A stretch of 64,000 nucleotides of DNA from contig NW_003314272.1 of the NCBI RefSeq assembly GCF_000143415.4, forward strand, positions 1,372,374 to 1,436,373, in the 5' to 3' direction. Under the pieces are notes generated by a model. That model had not been told where the DNA came from. It saw only the letters and a list, made by a program, of their open reading frames with translations, and ran no database searches. Origin of the DNA: Selaginella moellendorffii (lineage: Eukaryota > Plantae > Lycopodiophyta). The translations under genes were made by a program, and so were the position numbers. Below, in pieces: positions 7,160 to 63,555 of the stretch. The first letter of the stretch is position 1. Every line of letters begins with the position of its first letter.

Positions 7160-8820
7160 CACTATCTCACGTCCAAAACTCGCAAACTCGTCAGCCGGCT
7201 GTGAATCCACTGTCCATTCTTGGTTTCCTTCATATCAACCAACCAAAGAATAGAAGCTTCAAGTGTGTCAGACTTTTTGGTTTGAGCATTATGTGCAACT
7301 TTCTTTCTAGAAGAAGTTGACACGATTGAATTTGAACGATAGTTTGGCTTTCCATGAGTTTTCTCATAACACAGTCTCCCGGGAGAGCTCTGCAATCCAC
7401 CAGTCAGTCAAAGCCACAAAGTAACTTTACTTTGGGTAATGTAAGCACGAAAGCCCCTAAAACTTATTCAAATGGACGGGCATACCGTTTCTCTACCAGC
7501 ACTCTGCAACCTCAATTCTGTTCAACAGCAGGTTCTTAAGCTCATCATCGTCCGCGCCAACTAGCGGATCTGGCACCGCCACCAGTATCTTTTGGAGCAA
7601 CTGCTTCACCTCCCGGTTCAGAAACATAAAGTTGTCTCCCAGCCCGAAGCACGTCAAATGGATATGGCCGTCTTCACCTTTGCCTTCGGTCCATAACACC
7701 CAGTTTGAGGGGCTAACCAGCTTTGGCTCCTGTAGAAAGACCAGCAGCGTGACGTTCCCGATATCTCGCGGTACGTCCAAAACACCGAACTCGCATTTAA
7801 GCTTGTCAGCTGAGATGGCTTGTAGCCACCCTGTATCGGGATTTGCTTGCAGATGTGCGGCAAAGCACGAAGCTCTTTCTCGACTCATGCTTGCAATCAA
7901 GACCATGCACCGTCTTCAACTTCGTGTACACCAGTTCTTTGGTTCGCGGTCAGTGCGATATGATGAGCTCAACATAAACCAAACGACAACCATTCTTCGA
8001 CAGGCCCTGGATGACAAGAACAAGGACTACCATTCTTCTCGGCTTCACCATGCCATCTTTCCTACTCGGATTGGAGCTTTCGAGACAGTAATCTTGACGG
8101 AGAAAGCTGGGCCTTCAATGCTGGGGATCACACCAGTTCCTGCATCCGCATGTCAGTTGGCATGCTGCAGCTCAAGCTCGTTCCTTCATAAATGACACAC
8201 TCTCAAAATATAGCCGTGATGCAAGACCGCCCTCTGATCGTTACTTCGATCCAGACTTTGAAGGCAATGCATGACATTCTTGAGTGCCTGATCAGCGGGA
8301 ACTGCCGGAAGAATGCAGCCCCTAAACTCCGAGTCCATGTCGCAGTGCCGGAGGAACCGGCGAACGCCTTACGTTACCAATCCCATGATGCCTCTCATAG
8401 CCGTATAAAATACATATGACGTTATTTGTCGGTGATGTGTCACGTTTGATTTGTTCCACGTGTTCGAACCAAGTTATGAGGACTGGAGCAGAGCCCTAAG
8501 CGGAGACTTCCCATCCAGCTCCTCCCCCAGGACTTGCTCAAGATAGAGCACCATGGAATCCTCGGTGCTGTAGCTTGCAAGCTTGTCTGCGAGCTCCGGG
8601 GTCCGAGGAGGATAAGCCGAAGAATGTACGCTCGCAAGGCTGCAGTAGCAGACGTAAACTCCCAGCTGGCGACTTCCCCGTGCACGATGCCTGGACAAGG
8701 CAAGAGTATTATGCTGCAATGGATGCCTGTGCTTCACTAGTTTGAGAAATGCAGAAGAACGAAGACTTGCCCTCGTCCAACATGTTCCTCAGCTCGTTGA
8801 TGTGCGCATACACTGATCTG
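7160..8820. other. Unassigned coding-like relic upstream of the P450 (duplicated at 24445-26088)
   Basis: GC-richer region with short ORFs (7493-7906 -, 8474-8737 -). The two copies differ by frameshifts and mostly non-synonymous changes; family not recognised. Confidence 0.4.
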
Positions 8821-9193
8821 GGTACATTAACATAATACAAATTAGTGCTGCTTAACGATGTTTAAAAATATTTTTTCCTCTCTTAAAAAAATTGAAAATA
8901 CCTATAAAGTGATATCCACGATGCCCTACCTCTAGAATCTAAGCTCGCGATTACTCAGGCATCTCTTCACACACAGTGACATTGCCTCCTCATAAAGAAA
9001 GTTAATGCTCCCCAAGAGAGATATGAACAAGCTATGATGACAATGATATCAGTGGAATTTTTTTTTAGTATTTAAAATTAGGACGCCCACAAAGCTAACG
9101 AAAATAAAATTTCAGAAGAAACTAGTAATTAATAAATAAAATCAAAATAATCAAAAGATTAAAAGATGTACACTGAGGAACCCAAAGAACATG

Positions 9194-9489
9194 TTAAATG
9201 CTTTATTTCGTTAAAGTGGGACTTATTCAGTAAAGTGGGACATTAATTAGCATGTGTCCACATGCCATTTCCTAGTACTTAATTAATATTTATTAATATT
9301 TCTATCAGTTTTTTAATTTATTTTTTTATATTTCACAATATTATAACACAAAATCATATGAAAAGTTTTTAATTTATAAATTATAAAGTTAAAATTTCAA
9401 TTTTTTATTATTGTTATAAAAATGGCATGTGGCCACACACCATAAGTGGGATAATGAAAAATCCCACTTTAACGAAATAAAGCATTTAA
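9194..9489. mobile_element. MITE, ~290 bp
   Basis: Perfect 28-bp terminal inverted repeat TTAAATGCTTTATTTCGTTAAAGTGGGA (9194-9221 / 9462-9489) that includes a TA or TTAA target duplication; subterminal inverted CACATGCCATTT; AT-rich non-coding core. Confidence 0.85.
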
Positions 9490-9959
9490 GACAAGATGCC
9501 TCATAGAGACAATACCATTGAGTGATGAATATAAAGAAGTGGTGGCAAAGATAGGATGCATTCCACTGAAAAACCAAGCACCTGCTTATGGTTCTGGAAA
9601 TGAGACTAAGAATGGTTTGCTGAAGAAATCAAGTTGTTACGTAACAGATGAAAATGAGCTGGATGAGACTTGAATGTTGGACATTTAAACTGCAACAGAA
9701 ATTTATGCAGTTTTTTTTCTAGACTGATGTCAAATATGATCCAACAAATGTCAAATGTGATATGTTCAGTTTGATGCTAATCTTCCATGTATCGCTCCAA
9801 AGGATATACCATGGAGTGTTAAGGTTAAGGAGCTTAGATGAATGCAGGAGAGAGAAAGCAGAGAGTGTATTGAAGAGATAGATAGATCACTTTAAACAAG
9901 ACAGATTCAGAAGGCAAACTTCCGCTTCTTGTTCACACTCCCTCCCCCGGATCAAAAAA

Positions 9960-11000
9960 GTTAGTTTCGCACACTTCACCGTTTTGCTCGATGTCATTGA
10001 CAATCTCGACACCCTTGGGAATCTTCACCTCCTCTGACACGGAACGGGAACATTGTACTGCAGCAACGCTTTGCACTAGCAATACCTGCATTGTTCGTTC
10101 CTTAAGTATGAGCAGCTACAAAAGCATATGCAACGAACCCTTCACAGCTTGTTTTGTTACCATATGGGACTTGTTGCGGTAGCTCTGGAAGCCGAACTGG
10201 TCATACTTCGATTCCACCAAGAGGAAGCAGAGTACAAACTCGTGCGGCTTACTGGTACCGGCATAGATATTGTTCCATGCCGCTACTGGATGGCGCGCTG
10301 CTAAAGTTGGTTGGGCCAGCGTCCTAGCGTCCTAGTGTAGTCACAGCCCCATTATTCTTGATCACTAGCCTCCATACATAGTGGATAGCATAGGCACCTG
10401 CCATCATTCGCAATTAGCCAACCAATGGTAACTCAGCTTCATTTTCCTCCAGTAGAACAATTTTCAAATCTCCTTTGTAGTATCGCAACAACCTTGGTCT
10501 CGGTTCCAAAGGCTGGCAACCATCGCATGCAATCCTCACAAGATTTCCCCGATCTTCAGATTTGCAGTTTCTAAAATAGGTCATATCCGGTGAAAATTAA
10601 AAGTAAAGGTTGAGTCAATAACATTAAGCCATGTCATTTTATGTATGGACATTTTTCCGTTTTGGCAAAGATCCCAAAGAATATTCTTCCATCCTCTTAA
10701 TAGTCGCCTGTTTCTATCAGATCTATGCTCAACCTAAGAAGAATTAGTAAATGTAAAAAAGGAACTGATAGGCAGAATAGCTCCAAGTAGTACGTAAGCA
10801 ACGGAAAGCTCCTCAAAAACAGAGCCTCAAAGCACCTCATATTCAGTCTGCATGAAGTGCTCCAGGTCTATCGGTTCCATCAGAGTGAATTGAGCCTGGA
10901 CTTTTACACTGCAAAAGTTGAGGTAGTAATCTAGGAACGAAGAGCTCTTAGCCGGTTTAAGCAGGATATATCCTCGCCTAGTGATTTGCCTTGCATGCTT
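9960..11000 (-). pseudogene. Degenerate multi-exon gene relic of uncertain family (possible PD-(D/E)xK-like motif)
   Basis: Fragmented frames such as IHYVWR..WNNIYAGTSKPHEFVLCFLLVESKYDQF; a second copy lies at 52720-53795 (+). Confidence 0.35.
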
Positions 11001-11001
11001 C

Positions 11002-13441
11002 CTAAGAATCCCCGCCAATATTTGTTTCAACCCTAAAAGCTAGTAGAAACCAAAAAAGCAAGGTTGTAGTACTAGTGATTCCTGGTTGGCAAACAAATAA
11101 AAAGATGGCGCTCCACAACATCGTGAAGAACCCACCAAGAAATCCCACTACAAAGGCCCCATTGGAGACGTTCTCCTTCCACCAAGTTGCACCATCGCCC
11201 ACGTCCACGAGGCCATCTCCTTCGCACGGCCGGGAGAGAGGCTCCCCGCACAGTCCTGGATTTCCCTCGTAGCTCGACGCGCCAAACTCCAGAGTCTCTG
11301 GAATCCTGCCTTCCAAGTCATTAAACACGACCCTCAGATCCTTGAGCAAGTGAAGCCTCGCCAGTCCCCCTGGTATCATCCCGTTGATCCGGTTGAAAGA
11401 GAGATCCAGCACTGCCATGGACGTCATCTCTCCCAGAGTCCATGGAATGCCTCCAGACAGTCGGTTGTGTGACAAGTTGAGCTCCCGGACTCCAGCCAGC
11501 TTTCCCAAGCTTGCGGGAATCTCACCAGTGAGCTGGTTCGCAGACAAGTCGAGCACTCCTGGCACCTCCAACTCCCTTGCGTATTGCTGGTACGTGTGTC
11601 CATCCACGATGCCAGCCAAATCCTCGGACACAGTTCTTCGGTATGCATCGGTGGAGTTCTCCGGAAACACTCCCGCCGGTGTCATGGACGATATGTTGAG
11701 AGCCTGGTTCTTGTCCGCGGTCTGGAAGCCGGTCCATTCACCGATGGACGCCGGAATCTCTCCACTCAGGAGGTTGGAGGATAGATCCAGTAGCTGCAAG
11801 GAGTCACAGCTTGCGAGGCTGCCAGGAATACCACCCGTGAGCTGGTTCTCGGAGAAGTCCACCTGTGTCAATCGTCGAAGCTGTCCGAGAGTGGCCGGGA
11901 TGGAGCCGTCCAGTTTGTTGTTGGAGAGATAGAGTATGGAAAGTTTGGAAAGGTTGCCAACGGAGGGAGGGATGGAGCCTGATAAGCTGTTGCCGTGCAG
12001 CCTCATGTCGATCATCTCTGGCGAAGCTGGAGCTGGAATCACTCCGGAGAGCTGGTTTCCGTAGAGGAGCAAACTCCGAAGCTTTGCCATCCTGGCGATG
12101 GACTCTGGTATTGCTCCACGGAAGAAGTTCCTCTCGAGGACCAGCTCTTCCAGGTTGGTGCAGTTCCCGAGCTCCTCTGGTATTGCTCCGGAGAGCTGGT
12201 TTCCATCGAGCATCAAAAGTCTGAGACGCTCAAGCGTGCCAAGCGATCGAGGAACGCCTCCCAGGAGTCTGTTGTCGGAGAGGATCAGCGTCTCCATCCT
12301 GGGACACTTGGACAGCTCGTCCGGAACGCTTCCTTCAAAGCGGTTCCCGTTGAGTGCCAGCGACCGAAGCCTTGTCAAGTTTCCGACGATCGGTGACAGG
12401 ATCCCTCGGCTGTTTGTCCTCCCCATTCCCAGAAACTCGAGCTGAGTCATGTTCCAGAGCTGTTCCGGGACCGGACGGTCTGAGGTGTTGTTGAAATAAG
12501 AGAGTTGCAAGGTGGCCAAGCGCGGGAGCTGAAGCAGCGACACTGGAATCGAGCCATGCATGAGCGAGTTTCCGTTGATATCAAACCACTCGAGCTTGCT
12601 GTTGTTGCCGATCTCAGGAGGAATTGGCCCCTCCAGCTGCTGCAAGCTATACAGCGAGAGCGCCACCAAGTTTTCGAGCCGTCCAAGCTCATCTGGTATC
12701 CTCCCGCCCAGAGAATTCTCCCCGAGCGCCAAGAGCTCGAGAGACGAGCAATTTGCAAAAACTGGTGGAATGAGCCCTTCCAACCGGTTTCTCTCCACGA
12801 AGAATACTCGCAGCTCCTGCATAGCCCCGACTTCCTGCGGAATCTCTCCTTCAACATCATTGCTCGTCAGCCAAATCTCCTGGAGCTTCGAGCAGTTCGC
12901 AAGGGACGGAGGAAGAGAACCTGACAAGCGGTTGTTGTCCAGGACGAGTATCTCCAACCTCTGGAGCGCTCCCAGCTGGGGCGGTATCGGACCTTGAAGC
13001 TGGTTTTGCTGGGCGTTGAGAAAACGAAGAGCGCTGCAGTTGCCGAGATCCCGAGGCAAGCTCCCAGTCAGTCTGTTACCCGAGACGTCCAAAGCTTGCA
13101 AGCTTTGCAGCAGCCCAAGCTCCGCAGGAAGAGATCCGACCAGCCGGTTTTTGCTCACGTCCAAGACTCGCAAACTCGCCAGCTGCCCGAGTGCCGGCGA
13201 CGAGATCTCACCTGTGAATCCATTTCCTGCCAGATGAAGCTCCACCACCTCTGAATCGTCACTGTTGCAAATCACTCCCTTCCAGTCGGTGCATGCTCGA
13301 TCGGAGTTTTCCACAGTCCAGTCTGAGGTGTTTCCCAGTCCCAGGAGGCTCCTTTTCAATGCAACCAAGACCCCAGCTTTGTGTGCGTGTAGAGGATCCA
13401 AGCGTGCTCAACAGGATCAGCGAGATCATGAGTTCCATCAT
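11002..13441 (-). pseudogene. LRR receptor-like protein copy A, frameshifted after the signal peptide
   Basis: Plant extracellular LRRs, island domain, GNPGLCG cap and TM segment GAFVVGFLGGFFTMLWSAIFLF. An 11-bp deletion (GCGTCACTCAA) near 13388 relative to copy B disconnects the ATG and signal peptide from the 799-codon frame. Confidence 0.88.
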
Positions 13442-13614
13442 CTGCAACGTGTTACTACTTCACTTCTCTTGACGGAGAGCCCTGCAATCCATCAGTCAGT
13501 CAAGGTGCGCCACGATTTGAACTTGACTTTGCGACCTACCTTTATCCGGCACGATTTTCTTGCTCTCATTTTGTCCCCGCCAACTCTGTACGTGAAACAT
13601 AAAGAAACGTAACT

Positions 13615-14815
13615 TCACCAGTGATCCCCACACGAGCAGGCTCCCTTCTCAAAGTGGTGGAACCGGCTCCCATCTCTCACAAAAATCCCCTTCTCAATGA
13701 TATCTGAGAGGGAGTGGCAGTCGGAGCACACCCGGTGGCTGTTGACGACTCCCAGCGGACTAGAATCGTCTGGATCTTTGGCGGCGATCAGTCCGTAGGC
13801 GATGGCAAGCCTTTTGCTGTGGAAGCACAGGCTACGTTGTTTCTCCTCCTCGCTTGTGCCACCCTGCTGCTCCAAGTAAACTTCCCTCGTGTCGGGGACG
13901 TATCCAGCTTGCTTCATGGGCTCTAAAAGTTCCAGCAGCAGGGACCGGACCCTCTCCATCGTCCGGCCGTCGTGACCCTCGTGCTGCTCGTCTCTACCAC
14001 CACTCGTAAACATGTGTAGCTCGTTGTCAATCTCGATGTAGCTTACTGCCACTGGGCTTGTCACTCCGCGCTCTTCCATCTCCTTCAGAACTCTTCGAGC
14101 GTCGTCAAATCGCTTGGCAGCGGCGTACATGTTGGAGAGGAAGACGTGAGGGAGAGTCTCTGCCGGTGCTAGCTCGAAAACTTTCCTGGCGGCTCTCTCG
14201 CCACGATCCAAGTCACCGTGGCGCTTGCAACCCGACAGTAAAGTCATCCAGGCCACTGCGTCTGCTTAGTTTCCACCAGCTCTCCGGCGTCTCCCAGTCT
14301 TCCCGAGCGGCCCAGAACGTCCACCATGCAAAGGTAGTGCTCCACCAATGGTACCACCCCGTGGTCCATCACCAAAGACTGGAGGAAATCTCGACAATCA
14401 GCCACGAGTGAAGTATGGCTGCAAGCAACCAAGACGCTCACGAACGTGATTCCGTCGGCTGGAATACCTTCCTGTAAATCCTGAGGTTTCTTACGACCGT
14501 GCTGTGTGAAGGCGGCGATCATCGCATTGCAAGAGAAGGCGTCTCTCGTCTTCATCCTGTTAAACACGCGTCTCGCGTCGTCCAGGCTTCCACACCTCGC
14601 GTACATGCTGAGCAAGGAAGTCTTCATCTGCGGGGACGCGAGATTGGCTTCCACAACTCGGTGATGAATCTCTCGGCCTTCGTCCAAAGCTCCCAGCAGT
14701 GCACAGGCATTGAGAGCACTGGAGAAGCTCACACCACTCGGCTCCACGTCCATCCTCTTGAGAAGGTTGAGAGCCTCCTGTGGATTCCCATGCTGAGCGT
14801 AGGCCGCGATCATCT
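13615..14815 (-). pseudogene. PLS-class PPR-E-DYW RNA-editing factor, 3' part, copy A; frameshifted and interrupted by copia
   Basis: PPR motifs ([23 protein letters not shown]), GYVPDT, HSKRLAIAYGL, CSDCH and terminal CSCGDHW; frameshift near 14250. Confidence 0.92.
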
Positions 14816-15033: not shown

Positions 15034-18000
15034 ATGGGGAGTGTGCGCGACGCCATAGAGATCTTTGATGGCAAGGATTTCAGCGGATGGCAGGAGCAAC
15101 TCGAGTACTACTTTATGCAGAAGGAGCTGTGGCCAGTGGTCGACGGTTCCTGGACGCGCCCTCCCACAACGGACAAGGCTGACCGCAAAGAGTGGGATGG
15201 AAAGAACATCAAGGCCTTGGGCATTCTAGGCAGAGGCCTGGGCAAGGTGTTCAGTTGCCATCTCGACATCACGAAGACTGCATCACGAAGACACCAGTGA
15301 GTGAACCGAAGCTCAAGTCGGTTGTCATCAAAGGCGTGGCGAAGTATCTTCTGACAACAGCGACTACTCACTCGTCAAAGAAATTTGACGAAATGGTCCT
15401 TCAGTTGAAGTCAGCAGAGAACTTGATGGAGACCAATGAGGGAGTTGGATCTCAAGATCAAGCGCTATTTGCTGGTCAATCTTCAAAGGGCAAGCGATCT
15501 GCAACAGTGTGGGACAGGTTGGGCCCAATGAATTCTCCAGGGACTGATGGAACCAGTGGGAGCAAGTCCAAGAAGAAGAAGAAGAAAAACGACGGCCTTT
15601 GCAACATTTGCAAGAAACCTGGTCATTGGGCAAGAGACTGCACCAATGAAGAAGCAAAGAAAGCCAAGGAAGCTAGAAAGCGAGACAAAGGCAAGCAAGT
15701 GGCTAACTTTGCAGCAGCTGATTCAGATGACGAGCATGGCAGTCTGTTCATGGCTTCGTTAGAGGATCAGCAGGTGACAAAACATGGTCTGTTGAAAGCA
15801 GAAGTAATCTGGGTGGACTCAGGAGCAAACAGGCACATGACATACATCAGAGAGCTGTTTGGCAAGCTGAGACCAGTTCCAGACGACAAGAGGATTTACC
15901 TTGGTGACGATTACTCGCACAGTGTGCAAGGAGTTGGGACAATCAAGGTGAAACTTGCCAATGGTCAGAAAGTGAACGTGAGCAATGTCTACTATGTGCC
16001 TGGTGTCAAGAAGACTCTTTTCTCAGTGGGGAAGATAGCAGACGCAGGCTGCAAGATTGACTTTAACGAGAAAAGGTGCACCATCTCACGAGAAGGCTAT
16101 GAGCTAGCATCGGGACGCCGACATGCAGGGCTCTATTGCCTGAATGCTGAAGTGGTGTATCCTGAGAGGTTAATGCTCAGTAGCAGCGTGGAAGACAAAC
16201 CAGCTACACTAGACACTTGGCACAGGAGATTAGGCCACTCTTCCATCAAGAGAGTACAGCAGCTAGCAAGAGGACAACTTGTCCGAGGACTGAACATTGC
16301 TCCATCATCAGCTGGATTTTGTGAGCCTTGTGTCCTCAGTAAGCAGCATCGCCTTCCATTTCGCTCAGGTGTAAGTGAAAGAGGGAAGGATGTCCTGGAG
16401 CTGGTACACTCTGATCTATGTGGCCCAATGCAGACCATGTCAAGGACAAAGAAGAAATACTTTGTCACATTCATCGACGATTTTTCAAGGATGGTAGCAG
16501 TGAAGTTTTTGCTGCACAAGTCAGAGGCCTTTGAAGCTTTCAAGGTCTACAAGCTGCAAGCGGAGCTTGAGACAAGCAGAAAAATCAAGATGCTGAGAAG
16601 TGATGGTGGTGGAGAGTTCACCTCTAACGCCTTTAAGGAGTTCTGTGAGCAAGCTGGAATTAAGCGGCAACTTTCAGTGCCTTCAACTCCTGAGCAAAAT
16701 GGCGTGGCTGAGAGGATGAACCGAACTCTTGTGGAGATGGCACGAGCGATCTTGCAAGATGCAGGCATGCCAAATTTCTTTTGGTGTGATGCTGTGAAGA
16801 CAGCAGCCTACTTGAGGAATAGGCTGATTACTTCTGCTGTCAAGGGACGAACACCTTATGAGGTGTGGTATGGGAAGGCACCAGACGTGAGCCATCTCAG
16901 GATCTTTGGGTGTGTAGCTTATGCACTCAAGGACGAGCCCAAGAAGCTGGACAGTAGAAGTGAGAAGTGCATTCTCCTTGGCTATGCAAGCAAGATGAAG
17001 GGTTACAAGCTCTTCAACCTGAACACCAGGAAGGTGATCACGAGCAGGAATGTCATCTTCGACGAGTCTAAGATGTACAACACCAAGAACCAGCTAGCAA
17101 CCACCTCGCAGCAGATGCCGTTACTCATTAGTGGTAAGCAAACCCTAATTGAGGATAGCGACAGCGAGGAGGAAGATGCCTCTCGACGGCAGCGTGCACA
17201 CTCAGGCGGAGCAGCTACAGGTGGAGGTGGAGTCGTGGCTCAAGTTCCTCCCAGGGCAGGCCGAACTCTTCCAAGGAGTGTCTCAGATCTCTCACCTTCT
17301 CTCAATTTCGAGGAAGGCAGCTCTAGTGAGAGCAGCCAGCAGCAGGAAAGCAGCCAGCAGCAGGAAGCAGCAGCACCTCGTAGATCCAGTCGTGTTCGTG
17401 TCTTGACTGAACAAGGACAGCAGTACAGAGAGGATGTGGCATTAAAGCAGGCTCTTGAGGCTTCTAGAGTTGAAGCCAGAGCAGCTCGTGATCGCAGTGC
17501 ATCTGAGCCACCTCCAGTAACCTCAGCAGCATTTTATTATGCTGCAAGCTCACCGTCCCAGCAGCAGGAGGAAGTTCCTTCTGAGGACATGGAACTCGAT
17601 TTTCTAGCACTCTTTCACCAAGCAGAAGCCACAGTACCCAAGACCCTGCAAGAAGCCTTGGCTGGTCCAAATGCAGCAGAGTGGCAGCATGCAATTTTCC
17701 TAGAGTATCAATCTCTGATGGAAAATGAAACGTGGGACTTGGTGGAGCTTCCTACAGGCAGAAGAATCGTGAGTACAAAGTGGCTGTTCCGGATCAAGTA
17801 TAAGCCAGATGGCTCTATTGATCGTTACAAGGCCAGATTTGTAGCTCGAGGATTTTCTCAAGTAGAAGGAGTGGACTTTGCAGAAACATTTTCACCAGTG
17901 GTGAAACATGCATCGATCAGGATGTTGCTGAACATTGCTGCTCAAGAAAACTTGGAAGTCGAGCAGATGGACGTCACCACAGCTTTTCTGAATGGAGATC

Positions 18001-18808
18001 TACATGAGGAGGTCTTTATCTCGCAACCAGAGGGCTTTGTTGTTCCAGGGAAGGAACATTTAGTGTGCCGGTTGAAGAAGGCTTTATATGGCCTTAAACA
18101 AGCACCCAGGGCCTGGTACGAGAAAATGGACGCTTATCTCTTGGGTTTGGGGTTCTCCAAGACTTCAGCTGACAGTAACGTGTACTTGAAGCGAGTGGGA
18201 GAATTTCGAGCCATGATAGCTCTCTATGTGGATGACTGCATCCTTTTCTCAAGTGAAGGTGCTACCATGAAGCAGTTGAAGCTGGATTTGGGGTGCCGAT
18301 TCAAGATGGTTGACATGGGACCTCTTCACTACTGCCTTGGCATTCAGATCTTCCGAGACAGGAGGAAGGGAGTGATTCAGATGTCTCAGAAGAAGTACAT
18401 TCTGGACGTGGTTCAGAGGTTTCAACTCAGTGAGCTGAACCCAGCAACCACACCTATGGAGGTTGGTCTAAAACTCTCACAGGATATGTCACCGACAACA
18501 CCAGCTGAACAGGAACATATGAAGCGGATCCCATATAGGCAGATGGTGGGAAGCTTAGTGTACCTGATGGTGTGTACGAGGCCAGACATAGCCTATGCAG
18601 TGGGAGCAGTTTCACAGCACTTGGAAAATCCTGGCTACCAGCACTGGTTAGCAGTAAAGCAGATTTTCAGATACTTGAAGGGGACTGCCAACTATGGTCT
18701 TGTTTACAAGCAGCAGCCTAGGGGTATTCAGCTCGTTGGATACTCAGATGCTGATTGGGCTAGTGAAGTTGACAAGAGGAAGTCCACTTCAGGCTATATG
18801 TTCAGCCT
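15034..18808 (+). CDS. Copia gag-pol polyprotein; frameshift/deletion in gag near 15290, runs into gap
   Basis: FDGKDFSGW gag start, CNICKKPGHWARDC zinc knuckle, WVDSGAN protease, WHRRLGH/VHSDLCGP/SDGGGEF integrase, YVDD RT and YSDADWA RNase H. Confidence 0.92.
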
Positions 18809-18908
18809 NNNNNNNNNNNNNNNNNNNNNNNNNNNNNNNNNNNNNNNNNNNNNNNNNNNNNNNNNNNNNNNNNNNNNNNNNNNNNNNNNNNNNNNNNNNN
18901 NNNNNNNN
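18809..18908. other. Assembly gap (100 N)
   Basis: Run of N. Confidence 1.
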
Positions 18909-19224
18909 AAGGCTCACCCGATCAATATTTCCAGCAGACATCTGTGATCTACCGAACTGTTTCAGCAGCTCCAGCACCTACAAACATGGCAGTTCCACAT
19001 CTATGGCCGACAACTTATGCCAGCGGGAGTGACGAGATCTTTCCAGCGTTGACCACCAAGACTTTTATGAAAGTTGAGAGCATTGGAAACGTGGAGATCA
19101 TCGGTTGGGATAAGGTGTTAATACTGATCCACTAAAGTGAACTAATATACTCCAAAAGTTATGAAAGAATATTATTACAAGTGGTTTAATCCTACATACA
19201 CATTTATTATAACATTAAAACGAT

Positions 19225-20051
19225 TCACATAAATAGTCATTTGGATCCGAATGGTAGAATGAAGGTGGCTTCTGGATGTAGAAACCAAGTCCCATGGAAT
19301 GGTTCAGCAGCGGATTGTCAAGCCCATGGTAGCGTCCTGTGACATATACCCAGCGGAGGTGTCCAGATGTAAAACAAGGATACTATGTTGCATAGTCCAC
19401 CAGGTCTTTGTTCCCAGTCTCCTCGCCCATCTTCATCAGCTTCTTTTGGAGTTGAAGGATCTTGGCTTCGGTCTCCTGGATCATTTTGCATACTTTGTCG
19501 ACAGCCTCTTGAAAGCTTGCATTATTCGGGCTGTGGCAAAAGATGACACAGAGATAGTTGTGGAAGCACTTGATTTTCATCTCGTGTCGGAAGAAGAAGA
19601 GAACATTGATAAGGGCGGTGTGATCAGCCACTGAAATCTGGAGATTCAACCATACCCTTATCCAGCTTGAGATCCATGCAAAACTCACACATAATACCTC
19701 TGGCTCCTTCAACGAAAACTGTCCCTCTCCTGAGCAACTGATATTTCTCGAGACTTGGGATGGATTTGGCAGATCGCAAAGAGGCCTCCTCCACTAAAGA
19801 ATCCAGAAATGTTAAACAAATCATATAGCGAGCAGTGGGGGATCCATGAGACTCCGAAAGCTCGACATCACCTCCTCAAACATGGCATAGCTAGGATGCT
19901 TCTGCTTCTCTTTTTCACTCAAGACATAGCTTCCCTTAGCAACTTCAAGCAAAATATCAGCAGCTTTTGTCCCCTCAATTGGTGGAGGTGCCGCTCCTTG
20001 CCCAACTTGGCTGATGGCTCTCAAGCATAGAATTTGAGACAAGCTTGCTAT
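19225..20051 (-). pseudogene. Microbial terpene synthase-like (MTPSL) gene relic, copy A
   Basis: IPSLEKYQLLRRGT, degenerate NSE/DTE motif (DHTALINVLFFFRHE), HNYLCV and GHLRWVYVTGRYHG (WxxxxxRY). Start codon is ATA, the DDxxE segment is deleted, and there are frameshifts. Confidence 0.82.
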
Positions 20052-20842
20052 AAACTTCTCTACACAGAAAAAAAGGGGGAAAAACCATTCACTCCATTAG
20101 GATGATGCTAATTTGGAAGATCTCTAGAATATTCAAGTATATAAATAGGAAATATAGAACGAACTATTGGTTTTTCTAGCAATATTCTCAAAAAACACAT
20201 CTTTCTTTATTCAATTTTCATTTCAGTTGTTAAAATTTCAGTTTCATTTCCAACCACAATTACAATATTTAGGTTGAATTTTTTTTAGTATAGCTATTGA
20301 AATTCCTAAAAACAAGAAAGGCATTTATAGTTTTTATTCTTTTATTTTCTATTTTAATTTCTTAGATCAGACTTAAAAATTATGGTACTTCTTCATTTTA
20401 AAACATTAAGGTGATTATGTGTATTTATTGTCCACCAAAATTTATTAAGTACTTTTTCTTAGTTTTAAACATTTTGTATTGTTAGAAATGTGATAATTAA
20501 AAAATTTAAAAAGCTTTTTTAATAGATTACACTACTATTTTCTCTTGGTATATAAAATAATGTAACAACATATTGAAGAATAAATACACAAACACCATAA
20601 TAGTTTACAATATTAATTAATTTCAATAAAAGATTTATTCCTGAATATTATAATTTGATTTTACATTTAATATTTAAGATTGTCAAAGTAATATCACAAC
20701 CATTCTTAATATGATTTCTAACATACTTATCAAATATACTTTTCCTAAAACAGTGAAAAGGTTTAAAAAATACTAAATATTCAACACAGTTCTGTTTTTA
20801 TTAATTCTAAATTTATCAGTATAAAACTAATAATATTCATTG

Positions 20843-20900
20843 ATATATATATATATATATATATACATACATACATACATACATATACATACACATATAA
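20843..20900. repeat. (TA)n(TACA)n compound microsatellite
   Basis: Direct reading. Confidence 0.9.
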
Positions 20901-21964
20901 ATATAATGTCCACATTAAATAATACTAATATTTGATTTTCTTTTTCTAACTCATTAATTTCTTTTTATTTCTATTTTCTCTACTTATAACCAGCTACTAA
21001 GTTTCTAAAAATTTTCATTTTTCAAACCAAGGTTTCATGGTCTCAATAATTATTATATTAAAGGTTTAGTGTGCATAATTCATATAGTGGTGGGTTAATT
21101 TATCATATTTGGGTGATTTTTATATGACTCAAAAGTATAAGCAATAAATCTATTTATAACAGACATCTTTAGTCCTCATGAATTGGAATATTCTATTTTT
21201 ATTTTAATGTATTCTAACATAAAGAAGAAGATGATAATATATACTTTTGGAACTTATGCTTTAATTTCTATGAGAATTTTGAAATAGCTATGAAAACCTA
21301 ATTTATTTGTATGGACTTGACCTTTATTTTTATGGGATCTTATTTAATTAACAATACTTTACAATTTCATCATTTTTGGAGTTTAGAATTAGATAGTCTA
21401 AATTTACTATGGACAACTATTTAAGCTGGATATGAATAGAATGATAGTTTGATTTTTTTTGTTTTAATGAAGTATGCCAACTTGAAAAGAAATAGTTGCT
21501 TGAGTATAAAAGAGTCATTCGTGAAGTAGACATTTAAACTATATGTTCTTATATCCATTGTGACAATATTTCCAAATTTCTCCTTAAAGATTTGTATATT
21601 AATATTATAAATCTCTCTCACCAAAATAGAAAATGAATGAGTTTAAACAATAATCTTATTCTTCTTAATAAAAATATAATATTAAGAGTTAATTTTACTG
21701 AGTAATAATGCATTGTGCCTAGAGGTAATAAACTAAACCTAAAAATAAATTCATACTTTTGTGTTTGAGGAAGTTATTGTACACCTATTGTTCTATGTGA
21801 GTCAGTGTTTCTATTACACTAAATATGATTTTAGAATTGCATTGAAAATAGTTAATTGAATAACTAAGAAGACTATCAAAAACCATAAAAAAAACTGGTT
21901 TTATAAAACCTGTGTAAAGAATATACATAGAATATCCAAAAGTATTTAAATATTCACCACTGCT

Positions 21965-22295
21965 CTTAATAAGCATTGCAAAAGATTGTCAACGATCACA
22001 AGGAGACGGCACGGGAATGTAAGGTCTTCCTTGATATCATGCTCGAGTTCTACAGAGCAAATACCCAGGGAGAAACAAAGAGTTCTTGCTAGTTTGTGAT
22101 TACAATAACTTTCATTCCTGCTTATGGCTGGACCTGATACATCTGCCACCACAAGCGAGTGGCTCATGCCCTCAGTGATGCACAATCCTCGGGTTTTGAT
22201 CAAACTCCAGGAAGAGCTTGACAGAGCCGTAGGTGGCAACCGAATGGTCCAAGAATCTGACCTGACATTGGTGAATGCTTGGGCCGTCCACATGC
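21965..22295 (+). pseudogene. Inverted P450 fragment, unit A
   Basis: MAGPDTSATTSEW..KLQEELDRAVG..LVNAWAVHM; homologous to 1765-2075. Confidence 0.9.
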
Positions 22296-22589
22296 ATCAA
22301 CAATGAGCATGTGCATTGTATGTTACTTGGGGGTATTTTTATCCTATTGATATTGAGCATTTGAAAATAAATACTAAAAACTCATAAACTTTTAGGATGT
22401 TTATGAAGAATATAAATTCACATTGAAAATCTCGAGAAAGAGAAATGAAATTTGGTTGTGGATGTTGTGGTTAATGGGGTAATAACTGATGCACCAATTT
22501 AAAGTTTTAAAATTTCTTATTGATTTTTAGTTATAAACCTAATATAAAAAAACTTTCCCTTTATTGTTTTACTTGATCTCAGCTGACCC

Positions 22590-24123
22590 CTAGTTGCCAT
22601 AGACTTCCATCGGCAGCCTTGGAGTGGCCATGGCTTGCAGCGGAGTCTTGAGGTAGCAAGAGCCATTGTAAACCTCCTCTATGGATGGTATTGTCCCTGG
22701 CACAAAGCTCCAATCAAAGCCGTGAATGAGATTGGCCACCAGCAGCTCCAGTGTTCGCAATCCCAAGGGCATTCCAGGACACATTCTACGACCGGATCCA
22801 AACGGGAGGAGCTCAAAGTTTTGGCCTTTGAAATCGATGGAGCTCCCCAAGAAGCGCTCTGGGTAAAACTGGGTGGGATTCTCCCACACTGCCGAATCCA
22901 TATGCACAGCCCAAACATTCACCAGGAGAGTGGTTCCCTTTGGAACGGTATAACCGGCAATTGTGGCTTCCTGGGTGGCCATGCGTGGGAAAAGGAGCAC
23001 TCCTGGAGGATACATTCTAAGTGTCTCCTTGAGAACAAGCTGGAGATAGTCGAGCTTTGGGATGTCGGATTCTTGGACCATCTGGTCACTGCCTACGACT
23101 CGGTCAAGCTCCTCCCGGAGCTTGATCAAAACCCGAGGATTATGCATCACCAAGGCCATGATCCATTCGCTTGTGGTAGCAGTAGCATCAGTCCCAGCCA
23201 TTAGCATCTCCTGGAATGAACGTTATAGCAATCACAAAGTACATAAGAAGAAGTCTTACCAACAGATTTGCTTTAACGTGTGTTTCTCCCTGGGCATTAT
23301 TTCCGTAGAACTCAAGCATGATATCAAGGAAGTCCTTGCATTCCCGTGTCGTTTCCTTGTGCTCGTCAATGATCTTTCGCAAGAACTTCTCTTGTTTCGC
23401 ATGGATTTGCTTGTACCGAGGGATCTGCCAGTCCAGCCATCTTAAATACCACGGTACGAGGGTGCTAATGCACGAGGGATTGATCACCAGGTCGACAATG
23501 GAGAGCAGAATCTCTTTGAATTCTAAAGCGTCGGAGTCGACTTCGTCTTCACCAAAGTACCTCTTGCTCATCAAAATCCTGGACATATTGTTGAAAGCAA
23601 AAATGGAGAACAGCGATCTTATTTCCACGGGCTTGCTGTTGCTGAAAGACTTTAAGATCTCTCCCAAGGCATGGGAGAGCTCCTCCTTTCTCATCCACGC
23701 AAATGAATCGATGGACTTGGCTGTGAAGAGCTCCATGGAGCACAGCTTGCGAGTGTCTTTCCAGTACTTCCCATATGGAGAAGTTCCAAGTCCCGAATAG
23801 TTATAGCTGAAGTGGTCGCCTAAAACCATGTATGGCCTGGAACCAAACTTTATGTCGTGTGTGGTAAATACTTCCTTGATTATCTTCTGGCTAGAGATAA
23901 CCACAGTGGGCATCATTCCCATCTTCAAGAACACAATGGGGCCATACTTTCTGGAGATAGATTGTAAACTCCTATGTGGGGGCTTTCCTGCCAGTAAATG
24001 AAGGTGGCCGATCAGGGGCAGTCCCCATGGGCCTGGGGGGAGGTTTTTGAAAGATCTGTAGCTCCATGATAGAACTAAGAAGAGAATAAAAGCTACAAAG
24101 AGCACGACTGGGAGGATTTCCAT
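22590..24123 (-). CDS. Cytochrome P450, CYP71 clan, copy 2; exons 24123-23260 and 23210-22590, 494 aa
   Basis: Same structure as copy 1 at offset 17284, intron 23259-23211, about 8 amino-acid differences. Confidence 0.95.
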
Positions 24124-24444
24124 GAACGCAAACCTCTTACGCTGCCAATTGGAAAGTTGCTTCTTTATACGGAAGTTCATAGCACAACACCATACGTTCT
24201 AAGCAAGAGTTTGGTTCAATTGAGAATTGAACTAAACTCCAAGGCTACGCATGGAGATCTACGAGAACATGATCATGTAAGACTTAGATACAAATTTTAA
24301 AAGAAAGTTTGAATATATGGTTAGCATCGTTCATGTGACAAATAAACTTGCAGATGCAACACCTCGTCCAAATCTTATAGAGCTCGCAAGGGGACCCAAC
24401 TTGTACTGTACCTTGGAGCTGGTTTTGAGGAAAATGTAGCCACT

Positions 24445-26088: not shown

Positions 26089-26994
26089 ATTTAAAAAGAA
26101 ATTTGGAAATATTGTCATGATGGATATAAGAACATATAGTTTAAATGTCTAATTCACAAATGACTCTTTTATACTCAAGCAACTATTTCTTTTCAAGTTG
26201 ACCTATTTAATATTGGGGCAAATAACATTAAAACAAAGAAAATCAAAGTTTCGTTCTATTAATATCCAGCTTAAATAGTTGTCCATAGTAAATTTAGACT
26301 ATCTAATTCTAAACTCCAAAAATGATGAAATTGTAAAGTATTGTTAATTAAATAAGATCCCATAAAAATAAAGGTCAAGTCCATACAAATAAATTATCAT
26401 CTTCTTCTTTATGCCAGAATACATTAAAATGAAAATAGAATATTCCCATTCATGAGGACTAGAGATGTCTGTTATAAATAAATCTATTGCTTATACTTTT
26501 GAGTCATATAAACATCACCCAAATATGATAAATTAACCCACCACTATATGAATTGTGCACACTAAATCTTTAATATAATAATTATTTACACCATAAAACC
26601 ATGGTTTGAAAAATGAAAAGTTTTTAAAACTTAGTAGCTAGTTATAAGTAGAGAAAATAAAAATAAAAAGAAAATAATGAGTTAGAAAAAGAAAATCAAA
26701 TATTAGTATTATTTAATGTGGACATTATATATATATTGTCCACATAGTTTGAGTGAAGGGAAAATTATACTTTTATATATGATGAAGTTGAAATGATTTT
26801 AATGATGGATTTAGAATTAAAATTTCATGGTCAACAAAATTTAATTATCCAAGTAATTATAAAACTTTATAAGGTATTGAATTTGATAAAACTAATATTC
26901 TTGTAGCTTTTTAACAAATATATGGAAATCCAACATTTTTCTTATCAAAAGAAGTTTTAAAAATAAATATTACATGTGATTCTTTAAGAATTGT

Positions 26995-27089
26995 ATATAT
27001 AGTTATATGTATATATATATATACATATATACATATACATATATATATACATATACATATATATATACATATACATATATATGTATATG

Positions 27090-27130
<41 letters not shown>
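26995..27130. repeat. Compound (TA)/(TACA)/(TATG) microsatellite
   Basis: Direct reading. Confidence 0.9.
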
Positions 27131-27836
27131 GATATTATTAATTATGTACTGATAAATGTAGAATTAATAAAAACAGAACTGTGTTGAATATTTAGGATTT
27201 TTAAACCTTTTCACTGTTTTAGGAAAAGTATATTTGGTAAGTATGTTAGAAATCATTTTAAAAATGGTTGTGATATTACTTTGACAATCTTAAATATTAA
27301 ATGTAAAATCAAATTATAATATTCAGGAATAAATCTCTTATCAAAATTAAATAATATTGTAAACTATTATGGTGTTTGTGTATTTATTCTTCAATATGTT
27401 GTTACATTGTTTTATATACCAAGAGAAAAAGGTAGTGTATTCTAATAAAAAAGATTTTTAAATTTTTAATTAACACATTTCTTACAATAAAAAATGTTTA
27501 AAACTAAGCAAAAGTACTTAATAAAGTTTGGTGGACAAAAAATAAATATAATCATATTAAAGTTTTAAAATGAAGAAGTACCATAGTTTTTTAAGTATGA
27601 TCTAAGAAATTAAAATAGAAAAAGTAAGCTGTGAGTGCTTGGAATATGGAAATGGAATATAGAAATGTGCATATCAATTAGCCCAAAAACCCTAGCTTAT
27701 ATACAGGAGCGAGTGGTCCAGATTGAAACCAATCCAACGGCTACCAAAATCCCACTACGCTAATATTAGTATATGACATCTTAACCATACACTTGGCCCT
27801 CACATCATCCCCTCCTCTCGGGATAACGGAAGACCA

Positions 27837-45684: not shown

Positions 45685-46464
45685 ATGGCAAGCTTGTCTC
45701 AAATTCTGTGCTTGAGAGCCATTACCCAAGTTGCAAGGAGCAGCACCTCCACCAATTGAGGGGACAAAAGCTGCTGATATTCTGCTTGAAGTTGCTAAGG
45801 GAAGCTATATCTTGAGTGAAAAAAGAGAAGCAAAAGCATCCTAGCTATGCCATGTTTGAGGAGGTGATGTCGAGCTTTCGGAGTCTCATGGATCCCCCAC
45901 TACTCGCTATATGATTTGTTTAACATTTCTGGATTCTTTAGTGGAGGAGGCCTCTTTGTGATCTGCCAAATCCATCCCAAGTCTCGAGAAATATCAGTTG
46001 CTCTGGAGAGGGACAGTTTTCTTGAATCTCCAGATGTTGTAGCATTTGTCAACGCAGTGGCTGATCATGTTCTCTTCTCCTTCCGACACGAAATGAAAAT
46101 CAAGTGCTTCCACAACTATCTCTGTGTCATCTTTTGCCACAGCCCAAATAATGCAAGCTTTCAAGAGGCTGTCGACAAAGTATGCAAAATGATCCAGGAG
46201 ACCGAAGCCAAGATCCTTTAACTCCAAAAGAAGCTGATGAAGATGGGCGAGGAAACTGGCCTGGTGGACTATGCAACATGGTATCCTTGTTTTACATCTG
46301 GACACCTCTGCTGGGTGTATGTCACAGGACGCTACCATGGGCTTGACAATCCGCTGCTGAACGGTGAACCATTCCATGGGACTTGGTTTCTACATCCAGA
46401 AGCCACCTTCATTCTACCATTCGGATCCAAATGTGGATTTATTAAAACCAATTATTTGATGTGA
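45685..46464 (+). pseudogene. MTPSL relic, copy B
   Basis: ATG retained (MASLSQILCLRA) and GHLCWVYVTGRYHG present; DDxxE and NSE segments deleted, with frameshifts and a stop. Confidence 0.82.
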
Positions 46465-47529: not shown

Positions 47530-49626
47530 TTGCTACGTTTAAGCTCGGGATCAAGAACTTACACACCGGAAATTAGGGTTCTTCCGTGCGTATGCCGGCG
47601 GTCGCGAGGTGGCGGCAGGGAGAAGCTGCCGCGGCTGATTGCGCGCACGGAGCTCAATGGCGTGCTGGCAAGGGATTGTGCGATGCAGTTCCATGCCGAG
47701 CGGCATCTTGCCCCCAATCTCAGGTACCGCGATGGCGAAAAATGCCAGCTCCGTCGCGATTACCGAGCTTGAAGCGGTCCAGCGCCGGGAATGTCCTGGC
47801 GGAGATTGACCGGCAGAATGTGAGCGATCCAGCGCTGGGCTATGGATCGCTCCTCCGCCGGTGCTGCCGCCACAAATCCCTGGAAGAAGGTGGGAGAGTC
47901 CACAAGCACATTGTCGAGAATAATCTCAGGTGAACAGCCTGTTCACCTGAGATTATTCTCGACAATGAGGCAACTTGGTGGCACACATGTATGCCCGGAG
48001 TGGCAAGTTCCTGGATGCCAAGGCGGTGTTCGACTCCATCGCCAGCAAGAACGATAGGACTTATGCGATCATGATCGCGGCGTGCGTGAGGGAGGACCGC
48101 CCCTTGCAAGCGCTGGAGCTCTGGGGGGAGATGGAGGAGCGAGACAAGTTCATCGTGACGAGCTTGGTGCCACCTCCAGGCGCTCGAGGAGGAGCGGCGG
48201 CTCCGGGAGGAATCGCGGGGATTCGACACGAACGTTGTCGTCCAGAACGCGCTGGTGACAATGTATGGGAAGTGTGGGAGTCCGGTGGAAGCTCGGAAGG
48301 TCTTCGACTCCATGACGGCTAGGAACGTGATCTCCTGGACTTCGATGATCGCGGCCTACGCTCAGCACGGGAATCCACAGGAGGCTCTCAACCTTTTCAA
48401 GAGGATGGACGTTGAGCCGAGTGGTGTGAGCTGCTCCAGTGCTCTCAATGCCTGCGCACTGCTGGGAGCTTTGGACGAAGGCATTGAGAGCCTTCGTCCT
48501 CTCGATGACGAAGAGATGATTCAACTCGGATGAATAGATTCATCACCGAGTTGTGGAAGCCAATCTCGCGTCCCCGCAGATGGAGACTTCCTTGCTCAGC
48601 ATGTACGCGAGGTGTGGAAGCCTGGACGACGCGAAGCGCGTGTTTAACAGGATGAAGACGAGAGACGCCTTCTCTTGCAATGCGATGATCGCCGCCTTCA
48701 CACAGCACGGTCATAAGAAACAGGCACAGTCAGGATTTACAGGAAGATGGAGCAGGAGGGTATTCCAGACGACGGAATCACGTTCGTGAGCGTCCTGGTT
48801 GCTTGCAGCCATACTTCACTCGTGGCTGATTGTCGAGATTTCCTCCAGTCTTTGTGATGGACCACGGGGTGGTACCATTGGTGGAGCACTACCTTTGCAT
48901 GGTGGACGTTCCGGGCCGCTCGGGAAGACTGGGAGACGCCGAAGAGCTGGTGGAAACTATGCCATATCAAGCAGATGCAGGGGCCTGGATGACTTTACTG
49001 TCGGGTTGCAAGCGCCACGGTGACTTGGATCGTGGCGAGAGAGCCGCCAGGAAAGTTTTCGAGCTAGCACCGGCAGAAACTCTCCCTTACGTCTTCCTCT
49101 CCAACATGTACGCGGCTGCCAAGCGATTTGACGACGCTCGAAGAGTCCGGAAGGAGATGAAGGAGCGCAGAGTGACGAGGCCAGTGGCAGTAAGCTGCAT
49201 CGAGATTGACAGCGAGCTACACATGTTTACGAGTGGTGGTAGAGACGAGCAGCAGGAGGGTCACGACGGCCGGACGATGGAGAGGGTCCGGTCCCTGCTG
49301 CTGGAACTTTTAGAGCCCATGAAGCAAGCTGGATACGTCCCCGACACGAGGGAAGTTTACTTGGAGCAGCAGGGTGGCACAAGCGAGGAGGAGAAACAAC
49401 GTAGCCTGTGCTTCCACAGCGAAAGGCTTGCCATCGCCTACGGACTGATCGCTGCCAAAGATCCAGACGATTCTCGTCCGCTGAGAGTCGTCAACAGCCA
49501 CCGGGTGGGCTCCACTCTGCGATCAAACTCCTCTCAGATATCACTTAGAGGAGGATTTTTGTGAGAGATGGGAGCCGGTTCCACCACTTTGAGAAGGGAG
49601 CCTGCTCGTGTGGGGATCACTGGTGA
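47530..49626 (+). pseudogene. PPR-E-DYW relic, copy B
   Basis: YGSLLRRC.., [29 protein letters not shown] and CSCGDHW end; multiple frameshifts and CxxC destroyed. The 5' boundary is approximate. Confidence 0.9.
47909..47967. repeat. Perfect hairpin, 29-bp arms and 1-nt loop
   Basis: CATTGTCGAGAATAATCTCAGGTGAACAG-C-CTGTTCACCTGAGATTATTCTCGACAATG. Confidence 0.97.
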
Positions 49627-49839
49627 AGTTACGTTTCTTTTGTTTCACCATATGTCCACGTGGTGGGCACAGTTGGCGGGGGACAAAGTCAGAACAAGAA
49701 AATCGCGCCGCATAAAGGTACGTCGCAAAGTCAAAAGTTCCTATACTTTCGTGTCTTTGTGGCGCACCTTGACTGACTGATGGATTGCAGGGCTCTCCAT
49801 CAAAATCTGGAAGAGGAGTGAAGTAGTAACAAGTTGCAG

Positions 49840-57165: not shown

Positions 57166-57378
57166 CTGCAACTTGTTACTACTTCACTCCTCTTCCAGAT
57201 TTTGATGGAGAGCCCTGCAATCCATCAGTCAGTCAAGGTGCGCCACAAAGACACGAAAGTATAGGAACTTTTGACTTTGCGACGTACCTTTATGCGGCGC
57301 GATTTTCTTGTTCTGACTTTGTCCCCCGCCAACTGTGCCCACCACGTGGACATATGGTGAAACAAAAGAAACGTAACT

Positions 57379-63214: not shown

Positions 63215-63555
63215 TTAACAAGCAGGACGAGTTCTTGCAAAAGATTGTCAACGATCACAAGGAGACGGCACGGGAATGCAAGGTCTTCCTTGATATCATG
63301 CTCGAGTTCTACAGAGCAAATACCCAGGGAGAAACAAAGAGTTCTTGCTAGTTTGTGATTACAATAACTTTCATTCCTGCTTATGGCTGCACCTGATACA
63401 TCTGCCACCACAAGCGAGTGGCTCATGGCCTCGGTGATGCACAATCCTCAGGTTTTGATCAAACTCCAGGAAGAGCTTGACAGAGCCGTAGGTGGCAACC
63501 GAATGGTCCAAGAATCTGACCTGACATTGGTGAATGCTTGGGCCGTCCACATGGA
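63215..63555 (+). pseudogene. Inverted P450 fragment, unit C
   Basis: Homologous to 21965-22295. Confidence 0.9.

Follow-up and report, generated by a model that had tools for sequence, protein, structure and literature searches.

We analysed a 64-kb window (the whole stretch of DNA studied) from the lycophyte Selaginella moellendorffii, scaffold GL377576.1 of assembly GCA_000143415.2, positions 1,372,374–1,436,373, in which fragments of a microbial-type terpene synthase gene (MTPSL) lie beside cytochrome P450 genes of the CYP797B subfamily. An earlier interpretation made from the letters alone (hereafter, the sequence-only reading) had proposed that this is the remnant or edge of a terpenoid gene cluster linked to an immune-type receptor. 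Self-BLAST and domain scans revealed a repeated, co-oriented block composed of a CYP797B P450, an MTPSL fragment, a PPR/E/DYW fragment, a leucine-rich repeat (LRR) receptor-like protein and a hypothetical gene. The assembly is a Sanger one that mixes two haplotypes; N gaps are found at 18809–18908 and 59040–59139, and a gap of 1746 N lies directly left of the window.

Three MTPSL pieces are present in the window, and their homology to microbial-type class I terpene synthases is genuine. Copy A lies at 19238–19976 on the minus strand (Pfam, tblastn and five-copy alignment), copy B at 45741–46437 on the plus strand, inverted relative to A (tblastn and alignment), and copy C at 60538–61320 on the minus strand (Pfam, a match to PDB 9lpb and alignment). 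The open frame of copy C (230 aa, 60631–61320, minus strand) matched Pfam PF19086 (Terpene_syn_C_2) with an E-value of 6.4e-21 and a score of 75.5 bits against a cut-off of 23.7 bits, covering positions 6–198 of the 199 in the profile, and ORF pieces of copy A matched the same profile at E 7.6e-5 and 7.7e-6. A 197-aa ORF in copy C also matched the solved microbial-type terpene synthase 9lpb (E 2.6e-7). We then used P0073 (the closest JGI model), P0115 and P0116 as tblastn queries over the whole window, accepting E-values up to 1e-3; with P0116 the hits were C at 8e-129, A at 4e-82 and B at 1.5e-75. The terpene synthase motifs noticed in the sequence-only reading are therefore real. A HMMER search across 1.84 billion representative sequences returned just 39 relatives, and the top ones were all from S. 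moellendorffii. The nearest intact proteins are P0116 (XP_024535052.1, 369 aa, intronless), which we used as the reference and for codon numbering, and a cluster represented at 90% identity by P0115 (367 aa), which includes P0125, that is, UniProt J9QS25, named (E)-2-epi-beta-caryophyllene synthase. We take J9QS25 to be SmMTPSL26 of Li et al (2012). Protein identity to P0116 is 74% for copy C and 83–85% for two further copies, D and E, described below.

The sequence-only reading had listed a full set of class I motifs, and this set is present across the copies jointly, each copy holding only part of it. Within the window, the first Asp-rich motif, DDIAE, is kept in C alone, where it follows an in-frame stop and has no start codon; in A and B it was removed by a 56-nt deletion. 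The motif WVYVTGRY is kept in A and B, cut off there by upstream frameshifts and stops, and is absent from C, where a 20-nt deletion removes VYVTGRY. The stretch IPSLEKYQLLRR was found in A and C, while B has ...LLWR instead. The NSE-like motif reads NVLFFFRHE in A (Asp>Val and Ser>Phe) and HVLFSFRHE in B and C, in which a 15-nt deletion took the NSE Asn; in intact relatives it is NDLLSFRHE.

As the sequence-only reading had cautioned, all three window copies are broken, with truncation, indels and stops evident in a five-way alignment of A, B and C with D and E from the right flank. Copy A lacks codons 1 to ~105 through a 5′ truncation common to several copies plus the 56-nt deletion, and it has further deletions of 4, 3, 17 and 7 nt and a TGG>TAG stop (YAT*YPC). 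The 17-nt and 7-nt deletions, the NSE Ser>Phe change and the TGG>TAG stop are unique to A; the 4-nt and 3-nt deletions are shared with B, as is the 56-nt one. Unique to B are a 1-nt insertion, deletions of 64 and 9 nt and two stop codons; this copy has no adjoining P450, and Gypsy elements lie upstream of it. Copy C carries the 15-nt deletion, the 20-nt frameshifting deletion and a later 1-nt deletion. The ORFs had been described as unlabelled, which does not wholly hold for C: in one annotation, a 159-aa gene at 60628–61167 overlies it. A, B and C all lack residues 1–87 or more, and none retains a complete alpha-domain (residues 1 to ~335) in one frame. With the same three tblastn queries, the 64-kb window yielded no N-terminal MTPSL coding sequence (residues 1–87). 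We also considered a split gene with a distant first exon, which we rejected because those residues are not found in the window and the nearest intact genes are intronless.

Just beyond the right edge of the window, there are two further MTPSL copies and a fourth P450 gene, so that the word "edge" turned out to be literally correct. Copy D (locus L009, positions 9863–10666; window-equivalent ~79511–80314; minus strand) sits 0.65 kb behind the P450 gene and lacks the first 87 codons as well as the NSE Asn. The gene models XP_024529706.1 (251 aa) and SELMODRAFT_409855 were built on this copy and probably describe a pseudogene. Copy E (L009, 915–1974; window-equivalent ~88203–89262; minus strand), ~24 kb right of the window, is unannotated and near full length. 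It is the sole copy with an N-terminus, is open from its Met for 322 codons and has intact DDIAE and NDLFSFRHE motifs. E has the same 20-nt deletion as C, which removes VYVTGRY; its last ~45 residues are lost, and the frame ends in ...RWPWA-stop.

Comparison of the five copies pointed to a single damaged source for four of them. The MTPSL homology of A, B, C and D starts at one junction, at codon 88, and the sequence upstream of it bears no relation to the gene; C and D have an in-frame stop directly before this junction. At the Asp of the NSE "ND" (GAC in E and in the intact relatives), A, B, C and D all read GTT, which encodes Val. The shared truncation and the shared Asp>Val change suggest that the fragment was already dead before the block was amplified. 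Other lesions are distributed less simply. The 15-nt NSE deletion is found in B, C and D and not in A, and the 20-nt RY deletion is found in C and E and not in D, though C and D are 99.5% identical. A 13-nt direct repeat, GAGGGGACAAAAG, brackets the 56-nt segment in both C and D; this segment encodes LFVLDDIAETINEQ and is missing from A and B, together with one copy of the repeat.

Solved microbial class I synthases could be aligned to residues 13–333 of the intact relative, whose WSYVTGRY is matched by WSYLTSRY of 9lpb; residues 1–87 and the WSYVTGRY stretch are therefore part of the conserved catalytic fold. In class I terpene synthases, the RY motif is required for diphosphate binding. On the basis of this established enzymology, loss of the N-terminal 87 residues, of the NSE Asn or Asp, or of the RY motif would be expected to abolish catalysis. 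In the reference assembly, all five local copies thus carry lesions that are predicted to be disabling.

In agreement with the sequence-only reading, the neighbouring P450 genes are intact and belong to the CYP71 clan. P450-2 (P0001, XP_024529635.1; 494 aa, two exons) occupies 22590–24123 on the minus strand according to Pfam and the gene model, its start codon at 24123 being the end of the segment that had been singled out. The annotated locus of P0001 agrees with window 12590–34123 at 100% identity. Its 49-nt intron (23210–23258) has a splice joint seen in contigs from two runs, it matches PF00067 at E 6.6e-62 and 4.1e-33, and the exon-2 translation shows AGTDAT, ETLR, PERF and FGSGRRMCPG. 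P450-1 (P0123, XP_024529701.1; 5306–6839, minus strand) is likewise an intact gene model of 494 aa and differs from P450-2 by 17 nt and 8 aa. Of P450-3 (P0122, 498 aa, minus strand), the 3′ end lies in the window at 63819–64000 and the gene extends to window-equivalent 65361; the fourth gene, P450-4, is in unit D, beyond the right edge. Against a subfamily criterion of more than 55% identity to named members, we found 79% for CYP797B9 (in the 90% cluster of P0002), 67% for B13 and B20 and 64% for B5 and B7, and the genes are thus members of family CYP797, subfamily B. Identity of P450-2 to CYP797B1, B2 and B17 is 50%, and the top matches outside Selaginella are in the CYP71, 75, 76, 81, 82 and 736 families. 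Further CYP797B genes are found 22–44 kb to the left on GL377576.1 (locus L006). A literature search retrieved no described function or biochemistry for CYP797.

The reported spacing was also accurate. The distance from the P450 stop to the start of MTPSL homology is 2.6 kb (unit A) or 2.5 kb (unit C), co-oriented and downstream, as had been stated (~2.5 kb). In unit D, the distance from P450-4 to the fragment is 0.65 kb, and copy E lies 5.7 kb upstream of P450-4, again co-oriented. The wider spacing in A and C is due to an AT-rich insertion of 1.9–2.1 kb. In unit A this insertion (20344–22401, unstranded, ~24% GC, ~2.06 kb) lies between P450-2 and copy A and holds an inverted P450 fragment at 21976–22261; a partial inverted copy is present at 26090–27622. 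Since unit B is an inverted partial copy, P450-2 is placed between inverted AT-rich repeats (20345–21588 and 27622–26090). The insertion in unit C (61787–63660, unstranded, 1874 nt) has TCATA flanks and holds an inverted P450 fragment at 63052–63523, and an older copy of the element is found at 1–2075. The insertion is missing from unit D, which reads TCATATCATA at the same site; this may be the excision footprint of a DNA transposon.

An alternative explanation is that a Pack-MULE- or Helitron-type element caught the MTPSL fragment and left it behind a P450. The fragment is 5′-truncated and fused to unrelated sequence, with the 13-nt microhomology GAGGGGACAAAAG duplicated at the junction, and in A and C it adjoins an AT-rich element with an inverted P450 fragment inside it, TCATA flanks and a footprint-like TCATATCATA in D. 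However, the AT-rich insertion does not include the MTPSL fragment, which is present in unit D even though the insertion is not, and no terminal repeats were identified around the fragment. Moreover, the copies are restricted to the array, beside their probable parent E, and the sole related fragment elsewhere (locus L002, described below) has N-terminal remains of its own. We therefore regard transposon capture as very improbable.

For transcription, we used sequences mapped on 19000–24300 at 97% likeness; these came from two sets of contigs and from two RNA runs of raw reads that appear to be stranded. P450-2 was covered by RNA, with the 49-nt intron spliced. Coverage was zero across the spacer between P450 and MTPSL (20062–22539), and hence there is no read-through. 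Over the MTPSL, depth was 3–8 from 19354 to 20061; coverage ends at 19354, and the RY region of A spans 19324–19355. All reads on copy A differ from A at eight diagnostic sites and match E at each. In the NSE motif they show GAC (Asp) and TCC (Ser), as in E; at 19634 they continue with VAFVN, which is lost in A; and beyond 19976 they continue with the DDIAETISEQ of E at 30 of 30 letters, where C and D have one mismatch. No copy-A-specific RNA was seen among the mapped reads. Copy A is therefore without RNA support, and the transcribed gene is of E type. As a proxy for E, we also designed a 60-nt probe of which every 31-mer spans the junction of the 20-nt deletion common to C and E. This probe was found at a share of 1.00 in 14 contig sets of transcriptome size, drawn from five studies, the "RNA" label of these sets being a guess save where splicing proves it; one junction-positive set (X3) also has a spliced P450 contig. 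E-type MTPSL and CYP797B RNA were present at similar depth in the same two runs (two samples from one study). The expressed P450 reads correspond to an allele on another scaffold of 312 kb, P0124 (M71T, L442V), and differ from all four GL377576.1 copies at five synonymous sites; P0124 is probably the other haplotype of the P450 locus. In addition, a few read pairs of opposite orientation were observed in exon 1 of P450-2 (23602–23778), which suggest weak antisense transcription.

The sequence-only reading had held that missing linkage at intact loci would speak against a cluster. We compared seven loci, rather than the whole genome, within a radius of 10 kb. None of four related MTPSL loci (P0116, P0075, P0076, which is MTPSL30, and the pseudogene P0074) has a P450 within this distance; at the P0116 locus, on GL377589.1, the neighbours are of housekeeping type (Cpn60, FKBP, SMC and TauE). 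Conversely, no MTPSL was detected by annotation or tblastn within 10 kb of three CYP797B paralogue loci (P0002, P0004 and P0005; L005–L007). Intact MTPSLs were thus unlinked to CYP797B at every locus tested. With all seven other loci unlinked, the MTPSL/CYP797B pairing appears to be confined to this array, within which it traces to one insertion event. We found no MTPSL in the part of the left flank that could be reached, nor in L006, where CYP797B genes are accompanied by a PPR gene, and a profile search for further MTPSLs on GL377576.1, limited to 8000 candidates, added none. A literature search likewise retrieved no description of a physical MTPSL/P450 cluster.

Some other MTPSL loci attracted our attention during these comparisons. 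P0148, a 407-aa RefSeq MTPSL model of a different subgroup on another scaffold (658 kb), has a final exon of P450 origin, to which its 40 C-terminal residues belong (PF00067, E 3.4e-6); this part is 42% identical to P0001 over 43 aa and so belongs to another subfamily. On GL377587.1 (L002, 9700–10660), SELMODRAFT_413965 (178 aa) is modelled on a decayed relative of the same MTPSL clade as the window copies, with N-terminal remains in two frames, the DDxxE region gone, no P450 nearby and different flanks. Finally, an unannotated MTPSL fragment at L004 (12413–12730), 37% identical to residues 11–155 of MTPSL30, lies 1.3 kb behind intact MTPSL30.

The two gene types in the array have had very different fates since duplication. 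Over ~800 nt, the MTPSL copies have accumulated indels of 56, 64, 20, 17, 15, 9, 7, 4, 3 and 1 nt and three stop codons. The four P450 coding sequences (1.48 kb) differ by 4–17 nt and have no indels, with dN/dS values of 0.20–0.47 that rest on very few substitutions, while 1.9 kb of flanking sequence 5′ of the P450s has 108 gap columns. The P450s are thus maintained by selection. The copies are young: dS is 0.006–0.07 among MTPSL copies and 0.005–0.027 among P450s, and units C and D share 99.5% identity in the MTPSL and 99.7% in the P450. Compared with P0116, the local MTPSLs have a dS of 0.32–0.42 and a dN/dS of 0.22, and these values suggest that copy E was under constraint until recently.

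Taken together, we consider it highly likely that the MTPSL pieces in the window are non-functional pseudogenes, derived from one 5′-truncated duplicate and spread by block duplication, and that there is no working cluster here. The terpenoid cluster of the sequence-only reading is not borne out, as the P450-adjacent copies are one dead fragment copied and copy A has no RNA of its own. In this scenario, an E-like intronless MTPSL of the (E)-2-epi-beta-caryophyllene synthase clade would have resided in or beside the CYP797B/LRR array, and a partial copy without the first 87 codons would have been placed ~0.65 kb downstream of a CYP797B P450, a layout still seen in unit D. The block would then have been amplified recently through segmental duplications, both tandem and inverted; transposons would have inserted later, and copies would have exchanged sequence. 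This order of events is the one we infer. The MTPSL fragments would be passengers in neutral decay, the P450s and probably the LRR genes being retained by selection, and copy E would be the surviving near-full-length representative of the parent gene. Because the P450-adjacent MTPSL copies come from a single damaged fragment, the repeated pairing reflects one event that was copied, and not a co-location that is independent or selected.

Several observations nevertheless weigh against this interpretation. The 15-nt and 20-nt deletions defy a simple tree and therefore imply exchange between copies, so that the lesion mosaic would need gene conversion or recombination. The dN/dS figures are based on few changes. 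The expressed E-type message appears to carry the 20-nt frameshift, although some transcripts may be undeleted. P0148 is a further site where an MTPSL adjoins P450 sequence, and such proximity may recur in the genome. Finally, a near-full-length, transcribed E with DDIAE and NSE close to P450-4 makes a once-functional MTPSL/CYP797B neighbourhood possible.

Following this last point, the array could be the relic of a real module, in which a sesquiterpene synthase of E type once shared a pathway with the CYP797B P450 beside it, or still does so in some haplotypes; the truncated copies would then be debris left when this module was amplified. E is full length up to the RY motif with intact DDIAE and NDLFSFRHE and a dN/dS of 0.22 against P0116; it is transcribed and co-oriented with P450-4 at 5.7 kb; and the P450s are conserved and expressed. 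P0148 would add that MTPSL/P450 proximity is recurrent. However, the reference E is frameshifted by 20 nt and has lost RY and the last ~45 residues, and the junction of this deletion is present in RNA-like data from five studies. In addition, the nearest intact MTPSLs have no P450 neighbours and the nearest CYP797B paralogues no MTPSL neighbours, the P450 part of P0148 is from another subfamily and only 42% identical over its 43 aa, and no CYP797 biochemistry emerged from the literature. We therefore judge a module relic to be unlikely. The strongest form of this idea, that E-type MTPSL and the adjacent CYP797B are a genuine lycophyte sesquiterpenoid module with a horizontally acquired synthase, the 20-nt deletion being polymorphic (carried by the reference and missing in some haplotypes or accessions) and the truncated copies by-products, seems to us quite unlikely.

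Another group of features concerns the remainder of the duplicated block. In agreement with the sequence-only reading, the LRR receptor-like gene is co-amplified, with copies in the duplication map and Pfam support. The ORF at 11002–13401 (minus strand, 799 aa) has an LRRNT_2 domain, LRRs and a C-terminal membrane-spanning stretch, and no kinase domain; co-duplicated copies lie at 49834–52296 (plus) and 55855–57171 (minus). A PPR/E/DYW deaminase fragment, identified by Pfam, is found at 13615–14813 (minus), with copies at 48830–49564 (plus) and 57441–58175 (minus). An annotated 1192-aa model (8474–14247, minus) joins this fragment to the LRR ORF and is probably a chimeric annotation of two adjoining fragments rather than a real fusion. 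The link of the terpene synthase to the LRR gene, which had been cast as a "sense-and-defend" module, is supported by nothing in our data. Nor did we find the DUF26 fragment mentioned there among the 20 context ORFs scanned, a search that was not exhaustive. The array is interrupted by a Copia element (15192–18947), by Gypsy elements (27.6–31.6 and 40.5–44.5 kb) and by the assembly gaps. In the AT-rich region downstream of P450-1, an annotated 225-aa ORF (2153–2830, minus) has a Methyltransf_16 lysine methyltransferase domain (E 1e-31).

We also observed an inverted repeat of 2.9 kb that is 99.97% identical between its arms (47966–50857 and 59039–56148), spans the PPR-DYW/LRR region and abuts the gap at 59040–59139. 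Either an assembly artefact or a fold-back duplication of very recent date would explain it, and with such a repeat next to a gap the copy number of the array may be inflated. More generally, haplotypes or mis-joined repeats could have been placed side by side in this assembly, as might be expected from the gaps within the window and to its left, from the inverted repeat, from the near identity of C and D (99.5% in the MTPSL, 99.7% in the P450) and from the expressed P450 reads that match an allele on another scaffold. In contrast, A–E differ in specific large indels and in orientation, and the C/E-type deletion junction and E-specific letters were recovered in independent runs. We thus find it quite unlikely that such an artefact accounts for part of the copy number, and it would alter the copy count, not the conclusion that the copies are pseudogenes.

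Comparison with known systems is consistent with the pseudogene interpretation. The window copies resemble the (E)-2-epi-beta-caryophyllene synthase and P0116 in belonging to the same clade, in being intronless and in the motifs FVLDDIAE, IPSLEKYQLLRR, NDL(L/F)SFRHE and W.YVTGRYHG. Unlike P0116 and J9QS25, they lack at least the first 87 residues and have a damaged NSE, frameshifts and stops; the intact genes, on GL377589.1, are without a P450. Pairs of a terpene synthase and a CYP71-clan P450, and terpenoid gene clusters, are well established in angiosperms. The locus shares with such pairs a synthase homologue and a CYP71-clan P450 that lie a few kilobases apart, co-oriented, in a duplicating region. 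It differs from them in that its synthase is of microbial type, with each copy next to a P450 dead, and in that the pairing arose once, was then copied and is not conserved at paralogous loci. The locus also resembles tandem arrays of lineage-specific P450s and LRR genes with pseudogene fragments, given the dS of 0.005–0.03, the intact P450 ORFs, the Copia and Gypsy insertions and the inverted and fold-back copies; nothing essential differs, and the MTPSL fragment is the sole unusual passenger.

For annotation, our results flag two RefSeq models, XP_024529706.1 and the 159-aa model, as resting on pseudogenes (copies D and C, respectively). For the study of gene clusters, they indicate that terpene synthase/P450 adjacency repeated inside a young duplication array should count as one observation and not as several. 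If a working MTPSL/P450 pair did exist, it would be, according to the literature we searched, the first case in a vascular plant of a terpenoid module that is physically clustered and based on a microbial-type synthase, and it would suggest that the pairing of terpene synthase and P450 arose independently of the plant TPS family.

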